Shown here one piece after another: positions 15,442-27,733 of a stretch of 64,000 bases of DNA. The DNA comes from Salpingoeca rosetta. Its lineage: Eukaryota; Protista; Choanoflagellata. Position 1 is the first letter of the stretch, and each line of letters opens with the position of its first letter. The translations under genes were made by a program, and so were the position numbers. The stretch lies in the NCBI GenBank assembly GCA_033442325.1, contig JAWQFM010000029.1, positions 648,847 through 712,846 on the forward strand, read 5' to 3'. The notes under the pieces were generated by a model. It was not told where the DNA came from, ran no database searches, and saw only the letters and a list, made by a program, of their open reading frames with translations.

Positions 15442-18400
15442 CTAGTCTGCAAGCATGGCTGCCCTTCGCTGCATGTCTTGTCTATATTCCTGAACGTCCT
15501 GGTGCGGGTGCGCTGGCACAGGTTTCAACGGGCTGCACGTGGGTGAACCAGGCACACACACCTCCCGCGAAACGTCCTCGGAACCTTGCTGCGGCTGCTG
15601 AGGTTGCTGCTGTTGTCGTTGGTGGCCATGGTGGTTTGGTGGTGACGAGGATGGATGCTCATTTGTGGGCGTTGTCCACATGTCCCTGTGGCTCTCATGC
15701 ACCGTGTGTTGTTGTTGTTGTTGTTGTTGTTGTTGTTGTTGTTGTTGTTGTTGTTGTTGTTGTTGTTGTTGTTGTTGTTGTTGTTGTTGTTGTTGTTGTT
15801 GTGCATACTCCTTCTGCCCACCACCACCACCACCACCATCACCCGCACTCGCGTTGTCACCGTGGGCGCCAGCATCATCCAAGGCCTCGCCCATCACCTC
15901 TGCTGTCGCACGCGCCCTCGCTTCGCCCGCCAGTCTTCCGTTGCCGCCGCTGCCACTGCCAACACGCGTCGCGTGTCCATCACCACCAGATGTCGACACG
16001 ATTGCATCGGGTGCAGCCACGCGCCCATTACCACCGCTGCTGCCGCCTCCAAAGTTGGTCGGCGCAGACAGCACTGACGACACAGGCCGCATCACAAACG
16101 CACCGCCACCATCACCATTACGCCAAGCATCAGCATCAGCATCACCAGCATCACCACCGTGAGGGCGGGTGCGTATGTGCGGCGCCTCGCGTGGCATGGC
16201 CAACATGGGCTCCTCTTCCTCTCCAGCGCGATCAGCAGCCATGGAAGGCACAGCCACATCCACATCGCCAGTGTGGGGACGAGAAGGTGGTGGTGGTGGT
16301 GGTGGTGGTGGTGGCGAATGTGAGGGCGGCATGTTGTTCGAGGCAGCAGCGCCGTCCGCGCCATCGCCCCGCTGTGGACTAGAGGGGGCTGTAGACGCCG
16401 TGGCCTGAGCTGTTTGGCCGCTTGCGTGTGCGTTTTCCTGGTGTTGCTGCTGTTGCTGCTGTTGCTGCTGCTGCCGCGCTTCTGCAACCATCTTCATGCG
16501 CCACTCGTTGAGTTCTCTCTCGCGTTCTGGCGGTCGTCGGCTGTTGATCAACGCGTACATGCGATCCTCCCACTGCCGCATGTTGGCGATGTTGCGCGTG
16601 GAGTGGCGCCAAATGCAGTCCGCGTACGTTGCCTGCATGGCCTTCATATCCCCGTCAAACTCAAGAATAGCTCGGCGAAGCTGTCGTTCACCCTCAACAG
16701 CGTCGTCGTGTGGATAAAAGTACCCGCACCCCTGCACGCGCCGTGTGTGCGTTGTACACAATGTGTGCGTTTTGTGGGTCAAGGCGGGGTGGGCATAAAG
16801 AGAGGCGCGTCGCGTGGTCGTGTCGCAATGAACAACTTTGATCAAAGGGAGAATCGGAGAAATATGCACTCAAGGCAACGCACACACACAGACACACACA
16901 CACAGACACGCACACACACACAGACACACACACAGACACACACACAGACACAGACACACACACAGACAGACAGACACACACACACACACACACACACACA
17001 CACACACCTTGAGGTGCGGGGAGTTGTGGACGAGCGGGTATCCGGCATGCATGGTGTCAAAGTAGAGGTAGTTCATGGGGTTGCCCCACTGATGCGACAG
17101 CACCACGTCCACGTGTTCCGAGAGGTAGAACGGCAGCTTGAAGCGGCCAACAAACGACGCTTTATCGTCACGGTGCAGGGTCAGGCTGCTCTCCACAAAC
17201 CGCGCAAACTCGGGTTGCTGCCGAAGCTTATACTGAGGGCGTGTGTGCGTGTGTGTGAGTGTGAGTGTGAGTGTGTATGTGAGTGTGTGTGTGTGTGTGT
17301 GTGAGTGTGTGTGTGTGTGTGTGTGTGTGTGTGTGTGTGTGTGTGTGTGTGTGTGTGTGTGAAAGCGTGGTTGCGTGTGACCGTGTGAGCGCAAGTGTTG
17401 GTCGGCCACACGGTAGCTGCAGCCAAATGGCGTGACATGCTCAAATACCGCGTTTGTGATCTTTGCCTCCCGCAACAGCTCCGGCGAGTTCTTGTACAGA
17501 CGCTCAAGCACAACTGCAGCGGTAACAAAATGCATAAAGCGTCGTGGCAAATGCATGGGGAAGTGGGTACGTGAGTGCGGGCGCGTGAGTGGGTGAAGTG
17601 TGTATGTTTGTGTTTTTGTGCGTGTGTTTATGTGTGCGTATGTGTGTGGTAGTGATGTGTGTCAACATGCACGAGAATTGGAGGTTATGCATGCCACCAG
17701 CTCAACACAAACAAACGCACATATGCACAGACACACATGCGTGTACGTGCAGACACAGGACGGGAGGTACCAACAGACCAAGTGGAATGACGCTGTTCTT
17801 GACGGCGTGGAGGTTGCTCTCAAAGACACCGACAGTCTGGCGATTGGAAACACAAAGCCAATTGCGATGGCAAGGTGTGACAAGACAGAGGGATGCGACA
17901 CAAGGTGCAGACCAAGGTTGAGTAAACTTACAGGTGCTGACAACCCCCCCCCCACACACACACACACACATTTGCATCGTTGCAAGCACGTTACAGAAAA
18001 TGATCGCACGCACACCCATACAACTTCATGATCACCTTACCTTGTCTTTGCGCCCACGTGGCACGTAATACTTTCGCTTATCCAGCACCTGCGCCGCGTG
18101 CTCGAAGAAGAAAGGGCTCCACACAAACGGCAGCTCGTACACAGGCACATCGAAGATGGCCTTCAGGAACGACGCAGTCCTATAGCGTGTTGGGTGCGTT
18201 TGGTTTGCGTCAGTGTGTGTGTGTGTGTGTGTGTGAATGTGTGTGAGAGAGGGAGTTTGTGTGCGATATGAAGAGAGTGAGCTGATCGCATGTGGTACGT
18301 GCACTGCAAACAGCACACACCAACACCAACAACAAATAACAACACCAACAACAACAACAACAACTTAAACAACAACAACTTAAACAACAACAACAACAAC

Positions 18401-27400: not shown

Positions 27401-27733
27401 TTGTGCTTCGTGCGAGTCAAAGACAATAGCCGCCATGAGACGATACAGAGGTGGCCCCATGGCTTGTGGTGGCGGAAAGGTGCCAATGCCATGGTCCGGC
27501 GGACAGCCGACCAAAGGAGGCGCAGGCGTCGAGTCTCTGGTGCCTCCACCAGCAAGACCAGCAGCAGCTGACCCTGCTGTCACCCCCACCAGCAGCAACA
27601 CGGCCAAAGCCGCCGCCACGACCTCCACCACCTCGCTCCTCGCTCGCTTCATCTTCTTGTTTGCTTGTTGTTTGTGCTTTGTTGGTTGCCGAGGAATCAT
27701 GGACATCATAAACAATTTTCGCTCCTTCTTCAT
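15442..27733 (-). CDS. Large multi-exon protein: N-terminal signal anchor plus three tandem DUF2827-like (putative glycosyltransferase) domains, poly-Q linkers and a low-complexity C-terminal tail
   Basis: The motif DVV(L/V)SHQWxNx(M/L)NY(L/M)[16 protein letters not shown] followed by CGxYY/FY occurs three times (~24730-24840, ~20800-20905, ~17010-17115). Other conserved blocks: (V/I)TYRxGND, PFVWxP, VG(V)xExN, ERLY. The hydrophobic segment [17 protein letters not shown] lies at ~27580-27630. The start codon is uncertain (27733, 27709 or 27652). Confidence 0.8.
18335..18815. repeat. (AAC)n microsatellite with AACTTAAAC variants, interrupted by a ~134-bp unique island (18497-18630)
   Basis: Read directly; lies in an intron of the DUF2827-like gene. 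Confidence 0.9.
22625..22810. repeat. (AG)n microsatellite
   Basis: Read directly; intronic. Confidence 0.95.

Follow-up and report, generated by a model that had tools for sequence, protein, structure and literature searches.

A membrane-anchored protein with three DUF2827 modules predicted in the choanoflagellate Salpingoeca rosetta

The minus strand of a 64,000-nucleotide stretch of the Salpingoeca rosetta genome (contig C29, positions 648847-712846; the whole stretch is called the window below) carries, between window positions 15442 and 27733, an intron-rich gene that contains three successive matches to the Pfam family PF10933 (DUF2827). We read it as a single gene whose product would enter the secretory pathway as a membrane-anchored protein with three modules of predicted GT-B fold, belonging to a family that would have been transferred into choanoflagellates once and later triplicated here; we give this explanation as a whole a probability of roughly 0.6. 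Its three parts, the unity and layout of the gene, the fold and state of its modules, and the origin of the family, are taken up in turn.

Layout and identity of the triple-DUF2827 gene

PF10933 is the sole notable family that a Pfam scan finds on the minus-strand open reading frame (ORF) pieces of 15442-27733, and its matches form three colinear series, called domains or modules A, B and C below. The Pfam profile is 362 positions long, with a curated cut-off of 25 bits, and a second profile that we built from 69 full-length DUF2827 members reproduces the same map of the three series. All searches with window sequence were run exon by exon, the exons not being joined into a spliced model. The exon that holds the most conserved motif (the motif exon) scores 102-107 bits in each of A, B and C, the start of B scores 66 bits, and positions 185-244 of A score 55 bits. 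In each series the motif exon follows a pattern that opens ..GR..LP..... and runs on for 22 further letters; a shared 18-letter motif is present in A, B and C, and the next exon opens with CG.YY in all three. A preliminary description, made from the letters of this DNA only, had claimed three DUF2827 domains in one gene split by many introns, each with a motif written as SHQWxNxxNYxY followed by 12 more letters. The three series, the motif in each of them and numerous introns beginning with GT were all seen, and the Pfam search that it had proposed, expecting three DUF2827 matches, returned three. The features of the gene are as follows.

15442-27733, minus strand: whole gene, delimited by three colinear PF10933 series, ORFs and hydropathy
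27380..27733, minus strand: exon 1, with ATG at 27731-27733, 34-residue head, anchor, Pro-rich stem and first strand of domain A (LMAAIVF...W.AG); ORF 27095-27733
27548..27631, minus strand: predicted transmembrane signal-anchor, residues 35-62 (28 letters)
23904..27451, minus strand: domain A, at least 8 exons, from colinear PF10933 matches
27380-27451, ~26880-27035, 26158-26298, 25705-25837, 25216-25386, 24730-24927 (motif exon), 24353-24457 and 23904-23990, minus strand: pieces of domain A
24730..24828, minus strand: 3' tract of the motif exon of A, 99 nucleotides, discussed with the modules below
23250..23990, minus strand: one stop-free frame that closes domain A, crosses a linker of about 110 residues (poly-Q/His) and covers profile positions 1-84 of B
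20150..23501, minus strand: domain B, 8 exon pieces, from PF10933 matches
23250-23501, 22478-22639, 22112-22201, 21684-21806, 21317-21406, 20802-20993 (motif exon), 20472-20591 and 20150-20281, minus strand: pieces of domain B
19925..20281, minus strand: one stop-free frame that closes domain B, crosses a linker of about 55 residues (rich in Glu, Gln and Arg) and opens domain C
16540..19990, minus strand: domain C, 8 exon pieces, from PF10933 matches
19925-19990, 19167-19349, 18817-18944, 18041-18178, 17780-17845, 17446-17526, 17008-17232 (motif exon) and 16540-16731, minus strand: pieces of domain C
15442..16539, minus strand: C-terminal tail, about 365 low-complexity codons (poly-Q, poly-Pro and Gly/Asp/Ala-rich) in the frame of the end of domain C; ORF 15442-16869

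That A, B and C belong to one frame-continuous gene is supported by the open frames, by a published gene model (below) and by a metagenomic relative. Both linkers lie in stop-free frames between a domain end and a domain start, no new start or signal-anchor is seen ahead of domain B or C, and the tail runs from the end of C to the stop codon at 15442-15444; in the tail ORF (15442-16869) the Pfam scan found no family besides DUF2827 at the ORF start. The linkers had been described as Q-rich, which holds for the A-B linker and for the C-terminal tail, both with poly-Q, but not for the Glu/Gln/Arg-rich B-C linker. The relative, L170/P0075, has three DUF2827 stretches, X, Y and Z, with a single unbroken ORF that reaches from the last part of X through the whole of Y into the first part of Z. 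By BLAST, the junction of Y and Z in this relative shares 81% identity with that of B and C in the window, over the part that covers the end of B. It was found on a 5.1-kb contig (L170:1-5147, JGI metagenome 3300038657) and is intron-poor, with the modules in X-Y-Z order, Y uninterrupted and the rest of Z in short exons, and it should be a useful comparison for exon boundaries and for the age of the triplication.

The N-terminal head has 34 residues, 10 of them Lys or Arg, and is followed by a hydrophobic span (Kyte-Doolittle mean 2.58 over 19 residues), a Pro-rich stem and domain A. Because a basic head, one hydrophobic span and a stem precede domain A in this order, the layout is that expected of a type II signal-anchor protein, and the basic head suggests that the anchor has this orientation; the hydrophobic N-terminal anchor noted in the preliminary description is thus found at residues 35-62. 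A hydrophobic signal or anchor likewise opens nine of the 12 choanoflagellate homologues checked; in DUF2827 homologues from bacteria and viruses the domain comes at the very start, without such a segment.

Introns are numerous throughout 15442-27733, with (GT)n at their start and (CA)n at their end. Since there are about 25 spliceosomal-type introns in the GT...CA style of this genome, and since the gene lies on a long contig with intron-bearing genes on both sides, we take it to be an integrated host gene and not contamination. In six-frame translation the same (GT)n/(CA)n introns yield Cys-Val and His-Thr repeat peptides, which crowd ORF lists and word-based searches for proteins.

A six-frame PF10933 scan of the 55.4-Mb assembly (68 contigs) gave two loci, the gene described here and a single-domain gene on contig C2, and exactly two S. 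rosetta genes with PF10933 are listed by Matriano et al. 2021 (PMC7971027, Table S1): PTSG_12819 (EGD78092, F2ULU3), a single protein model of 1757 amino acids with 25 introns, and PTSG_01555, of 405 amino acids with 6 introns. Because the genome has two PF10933 loci and the other is the 405-amino-acid gene, the gene in the window is very probably PTSG_12819. The second locus (C2:2724313-2726109) holds an intron-bearing, PTSG_01555-like paralogue with one module, which shares genome, family and clade with the triple gene; a run of N (about positions 1070-1170 of L005, one of the two extracts of this locus, L005 and L008) stands where the motif exon of this paralogue is expected.

The foreign origin of PTSG_12819 is on record in the same study, where it is given an alien index of 121, labelled 'FOREIGN' and shown in a dedicated tree (Fig. 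S1-90 of the PMC7971027 supplement); its best match there is a Burkholderia pseudomallei DUF2827 protein (34% identity), no metazoan match is reported, and its origin is placed at the choanoflagellate ancestor (Matriano et al. 2021). This reading of horizontal transfer is already published, in the supplement only. Among the papers that could be searched, the main texts do not name PTSG_12819, PTSG_01555, EGD78092, F2ULU3 or PF10933, and nothing turned up on the three-module layout, the fold, the anchor, the relatives in phage or the tract of conversion between A and C (below). The name DUF2827 occurs in just two of these papers, and one, a preprint cited below, discusses the family. The gene is thus unstudied but catalogued.

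Predicted fold and state of the modules

The fold was predicted with AlphaFold2 and a 69-sequence alignment for P0078, a choanoflagellate homologue of 399 amino acids that by its transcript numbering is probably from Microstomoeca roanoka and that is 58-69% identical to the window modules over the motif exon (BLAST). The model (predicted local distance difference test score 92.6, predicted template modelling score 0.91) has two beta-alpha-beta halves. Its best Foldseek matches in the PDB are GT4-type glycosyltransferases of GT-B fold, BshA, MshA, PimA, PimB', WbnH and HepE, at probability 1.00, with template modelling (TM) scores of 0.55-0.68 and only 10-14% identity; UDP-GlcNAc 2-epimerases and the pseudo-glycosyltransferase VldE are also among the matches. 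The GT-B fold that the preliminary description expected from such a search was therefore found, on the homologue. On this model DUF2827 has a GT-B fold and is GT4-like but is a sequence family of its own, and the gene is not classed as GT4; the two-Rossmann-half fold is shared with BshA, MshA, PimA and PimB', whereas the motif SHQW.N..NY / GYPLVHNS is peculiar to DUF2827. In GT-B enzymes the C-terminal half binds the sugar-nucleotide donor. The conserved family motif (24 letters) sits in the C-terminal half of the predicted fold, and from this general knowledge of GT-B enzymes the motif half of the family is taken to be the donor-binding half.

The integrity of the modules was judged by aligning each exon piece separately to P0078 and scoring 22 invariant or near-invariant family positions, chosen from the 69-sequence alignment. 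Modules B and C each keep 21 of the 22, the exception in both being Pro219, which is Ser; their PF10933 matches run in order from about position 1-3 to position 362, and both modules are probably active. Module A is colinear with the profile, with positions 1-190 matched weakly or by eye. It keeps all 15 near-invariant positions of the C-terminal half apart from Lys225, which is Arg; for the near-invariant residues of its N-terminal half no alignment to P0078 was obtained, and the translations of these exons, read by eye, are without GN.Y and W..P and have Tyr in place of the Trp of P..W. In module X of L170, the presumed orthologue of A, the N-terminal half is well conserved (78 bits over profile positions 90-239). 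The earlier claim of three complete repeats can be kept for B and C, which are full, and for A in length and order, but the N-terminal half of A matches the family weakly. Module A may either use a different acceptor or no longer be catalytic, its donor half apparently kept and its acceptor half remodelled.

The 3' tract of the motif exon of A, listed above, is identical in DNA at 98 of its 99 positions to positions 17008-17106 in module C; the sequence just upstream has diverged, and the tract ends at the start of a GT-repeat intron. The identity between 24730-24828 and 17008-17106 is probably due to gene conversion between repeats of one gene.

Relatives and origin of the family

A profile of the motif exon, run against 1.84 billion cluster representatives, gave 578 matches at E <= 0.001, the closest of which are choanoflagellate fragments and proteins. 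The distribution in eukaryotes was read from searches that list the best 110-150 matches. Among the matches listed, all seven named eukaryotic homologues are from choanoflagellates of both orders: three from Stephanoeca and one each from Bicosta, Barroeca, Microstomoeca and S. helianthica (source species Stephanoeca diplocostata, Bicosta minor, Barroeca monosierra, Microstomoeca roanoka and Salpingoeca helianthica). Identity falls from 41-51% for choanoflagellates to 38% or less for other matches. Relatives are encoded by 100 viral contigs, and the nearest Atlas clusters are mostly Uroviricota and Pseudomonadota. In the GTDB genomes 404 stretches matched, the kept ones belonging to Caballeronia, Paraburkholderia, Variovorax, Polaromonas and Cupriavidus; this search used a 12-sequence alignment and the kept loci were ranked toward Caballeronia relatives, so that bacterial breadth is under-sampled. 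The family had been described as mainly of Burkholderia-type bacteria; it does occur across Burkholderiales but is also common in phage and viral contigs.

Two unrooted trees were made by quick maximum-likelihood searches under LG+C20. In both, the choanoflagellate sequences (5 in one, 12 in the other) form one clade on a long branch among phage and bacterial sequences, with a support of 99 in the Shimodaira-Hasegawa-like approximate likelihood ratio test (SH-aLRT), which is the outcome of the phylogeny against bacterial and viral homologues proposed earlier. The single-domain paralogue has orthologues in Barroeca and Microstomoeca, and module Y of L170 falls with these. Because choanoflagellates are the only eukaryotes found and form one clade in a prokaryote and phage family, the data fit an old horizontal acquisition from a bacterium or phage. 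The broad vertical inheritance in eukaryotes that would have spoken against this was not seen among the matches listed. The acquisition proposed in the preliminary description thus agrees with the single, choanoflagellate-only clade, but as an idea it had been anticipated by Matriano et al. 2021.

The donor may have been a bacterium or a phage. Genes for DnaB, RNR and ThyX give one of the nearer viral contigs a phage-like character. A giant virus was considered as the donor, on account of viral contigs of 0.4-0.7 Mb and one giant-virus metagenome-assembled genome (GVMAG), and is not claimed: the Atlas clusters are mostly Uroviricota, a contig in the sister group has DnaB, RNR and ThyX, and a 421-kb contig has packed, co-directional genes.

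The triplication would be younger than the transfer. Of the 17 exon pieces compared by BLAST, 15 had matches; the best was from a choanoflagellate, or tied with the best other match, in 14 of these 15, and marginally lower in the remaining one. A phase-0 intron lies right after HNSP..K in A, B and C, in L170-Z and in L171, and the next exon of the C2 paralogue begins at the same point. Since introns are shared and the best exon matches are choanoflagellate, the comparisons point to one entry of the family, followed by a gain of introns and, later, by duplication and triplication within the choanoflagellates. An inherited bacterial array of three genes was considered as the source of the triplet and rejected in view of the one choanoflagellate clade, these best matches and the shared introns. 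The Burkholderiales paralogues of one triplet fall in different parts of the tree, and because these old paralogues are scattered in this way the eukaryotic triplet does not appear to be a copy of a bacterial one.

Possible function, alternatives and the neighbouring gene

On these grounds the product would be a type II membrane protein with a short basic head, one anchor, three modules connected through disordered linkers rich in Gln, and a long disordered tail. Each module would have the GT-B fold, its two Rossmann-like halves serving the acceptor and the sugar donor respectively. We infer that the protein would lie in the endoplasmic reticulum or Golgi or at the cell surface, its modules lumenal or extracellular, and would transfer sugars to secreted or matrix glycoconjugates. 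A single transfer from a bacterium or phage would have brought the DUF2827 gene into the stem lineage of the choanoflagellates; a signal-anchor and introns would then have been gained, several paralogues formed, and the domain triplicated in tandem in this gene.

Gene contexts in bacteria, phage and metagenomes fit a role in sugar transfer, because DUF2827 genes sit among other glycosyltransferases or beside adhesins, though they fix neither donor nor acceptor. Caballeronia sp. GAFFF1 has, in tandem and in one direction, three DUF2827 genes that encode proteins of 385, 383 and 375 amino acids (L090:6001-10646), the first two overlapping by 4 bp, and they are directly followed by a small ESPR + YadA_stalk gene, that is, a trimeric autotransporter adhesin. 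This layout, found independently, agrees with a proposal of cytoplasmic glycosylation of adhesins by DUF2827 proteins (bioRxiv 10.64898/2026.01.22.700529), in which they are called 'potential glycosyltransferases' and no assay is given. Two to four DUF2827 matches within 13 kb are present in 85 of the 159 loci fetched, and the multi-match loci inspected are mostly bacterial. On an IMG/VR contig of 421,673 bp, which may be a megaphage or a giant virus, a tightly packed run (L012:5983-12350) consists of a DUF2827-methyltransferase fusion, a second DUF2827 gene, two GT2 genes and a GT32-type gene; three large ORFs upstream have no Pfam match. The very long proteins P0108, P0233 and P0154 of AT-rich metagenome sequences have two DUF2827 domains together with GT41 (plus a DUF1796 peptidase-like end) or GT25.

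The Burkholderiales runs share with the S. rosetta gene the Pfam family, the motif set and the predicted GT-B fold, and in Caballeronia they also come in threes. They are however separate cytoplasmic polypeptides of about 380 amino acids without a signal peptide, encoded two or three together beside trimeric autotransporter adhesins, whereas in S. rosetta the three modules are fused, membrane-anchored, interrupted by about 25 introns and placed in a separate choanoflagellate clade. P0108, P0233 and P0154 carry two DUF2827 domains on one chain but are fused to GT41 or GT25 and lack the choanoflagellate-type anchor. LARGE1 (GT8+GT49), EXT1/EXT2 (GT47+GT64) and the chondroitin synthases are type II multi-domain Golgi glycosyltransferases that build polymers or multi-step glycans. 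They combine two families, whereas this gene has three copies of one, probably of prokaryotic or phage origin, with long disordered linkers between them. Multi-step glycan assembly by the modules and a role in rosette formation, both raised in the preliminary description, are conjecture. A bolder version would be a lumen-facing assembly line specific to choanoflagellates and descended from an adhesin-glycosylating enzyme set of a phage or bacterium, in which each of three modules adds one step of a lineage-specific O-glycan to Ser/Thr-rich matrix or theca proteins; the 'three DUF2827 enzymes per substrate' logic of Burkholderiales operons would then have been reached independently, by fusion of three copies into one chain. 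We consider it doubtful.

Several points weigh against the three-module glycosyltransferase reading and feed its rivals. The N-terminal half of A is barely recognisable, at 24-29 bits with the Pfam profile and about 0 bits with our own, and it is possible, though on the whole unlikely, that only one or two modules are enzymes, A and perhaps others being a pseudo-glycosyltransferase or serving in carbohydrate binding or scaffolding. The missing GN.Y and W..P and the Tyr for Trp would be at home in such a module, as would a motif exon that seems to be kept similar by conversion from C and not by its own history; yet A retains the near-invariant residues of its C-terminal half except for the Lys to Arg change, its exons are open and colinear, and the N-terminal half of L170 module X still scores its 78 bits. 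The fold was predicted on the homologue P0078, a profile search of all PDB sequences gave no glycosyltransferase match but only a chance match to RsfS, and no DUF2827 member is known to have a measured activity. A GT-B protein with other chemistry, an epimerase, a hydrolase or another group transferase, would account for the UDP-GlcNAc 2-epimerases and VldE among the Foldseek matches in a family that has no assay; it is nevertheless improbable, as true GT4 transferases lead the matches in both quality and number, and the phage and bacterial genes keep the company of glycosyltransferases or adhesins.

The other reservations concern gene unity and origin. The reading as a single transcript is drawn from open frames, the published model and one relative, and the identification as PTSG_12819 was reached by elimination. 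In a genome rich in GC and in repeats, linkers of poly-Q or low complexity could lack stops by chance, so that the modules might be separate genes, or the model a fusion artefact with linkers that are not co-translated; but both linkers are stop-free with conserved domain ends on either side, neither B nor C is preceded by a signal-anchor or start of its own, the ORF of L170 joins the end of X, Y and the start of Z with a junction 81% identical, and the published model is a single protein of 1757 amino acids, and this alternative is hardly credible. For the origin, the absence from other eukaryotes is read from the best 110-150 matches listed, neither of the two quick-search trees is rooted, and the grouping next to the choanoflagellates is weakly supported (74-85). 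With the choanoflagellates on a long branch, such trees would also accommodate an ancient eukaryotic gene lost outside choanoflagellates, or one passed from choanoflagellates to viruses and bacteria. We hold this to be very improbable: all named eukaryotic homologues among the matches listed are choanoflagellate, the published screen had no metazoan match and put the origin at the choanoflagellate ancestor, and the diversity outside eukaryotes (578 cluster representatives, 404 bacterial stretches, 100 viral contigs) is far larger and spread across the tree.

A three-module DUF2827 glycosyltransferase in the secretory pathway of a eukaryote would offer a tractable way to learn what DUF2827 does. 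Gene editing works in S. rosetta, and cell-cell adhesion that depends on glycans has been studied there. Wetzel et al. in 2018 reportedly dealt with such adhesion. The gene would also show clearly how, in the protists most closely related to animals, an enzyme taken from prey or phage can be remodelled by a signal-anchor, introns and duplication within the gene. Its practical value is moderate, since both the gene and its foreign origin have been recorded before, and no evidence here ties it to rosettes or to its neighbour.

The convergent neighbour was annotated from its last exons:

13394..14995, plus strand: last exons of the convergent neighbour, with a poly-Thr run (about 40 residues) and, at the C-terminus, a module rich in Cys and Asn; separate from the enzyme

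Its end at 14995 leaves 446 bp to the stop codon of the triple-DUF2827 gene, the two lying tail-to-tail, which matches the spacing of about 450 bp to a poly-Thr protein given in the preliminary description; that it is a substrate is conjecture, convergent adjacency being weak evidence. Pfam finds nothing in the neighbour even at E 10. Its C-terminal module holds 'EPND...DADWYKF'; a bacterial pre-peptidase C-terminal (PPC) domain was considered for its likeness and set aside in view of this Pfam result. A candidate signal peptide is present in ORF 11628-12077.

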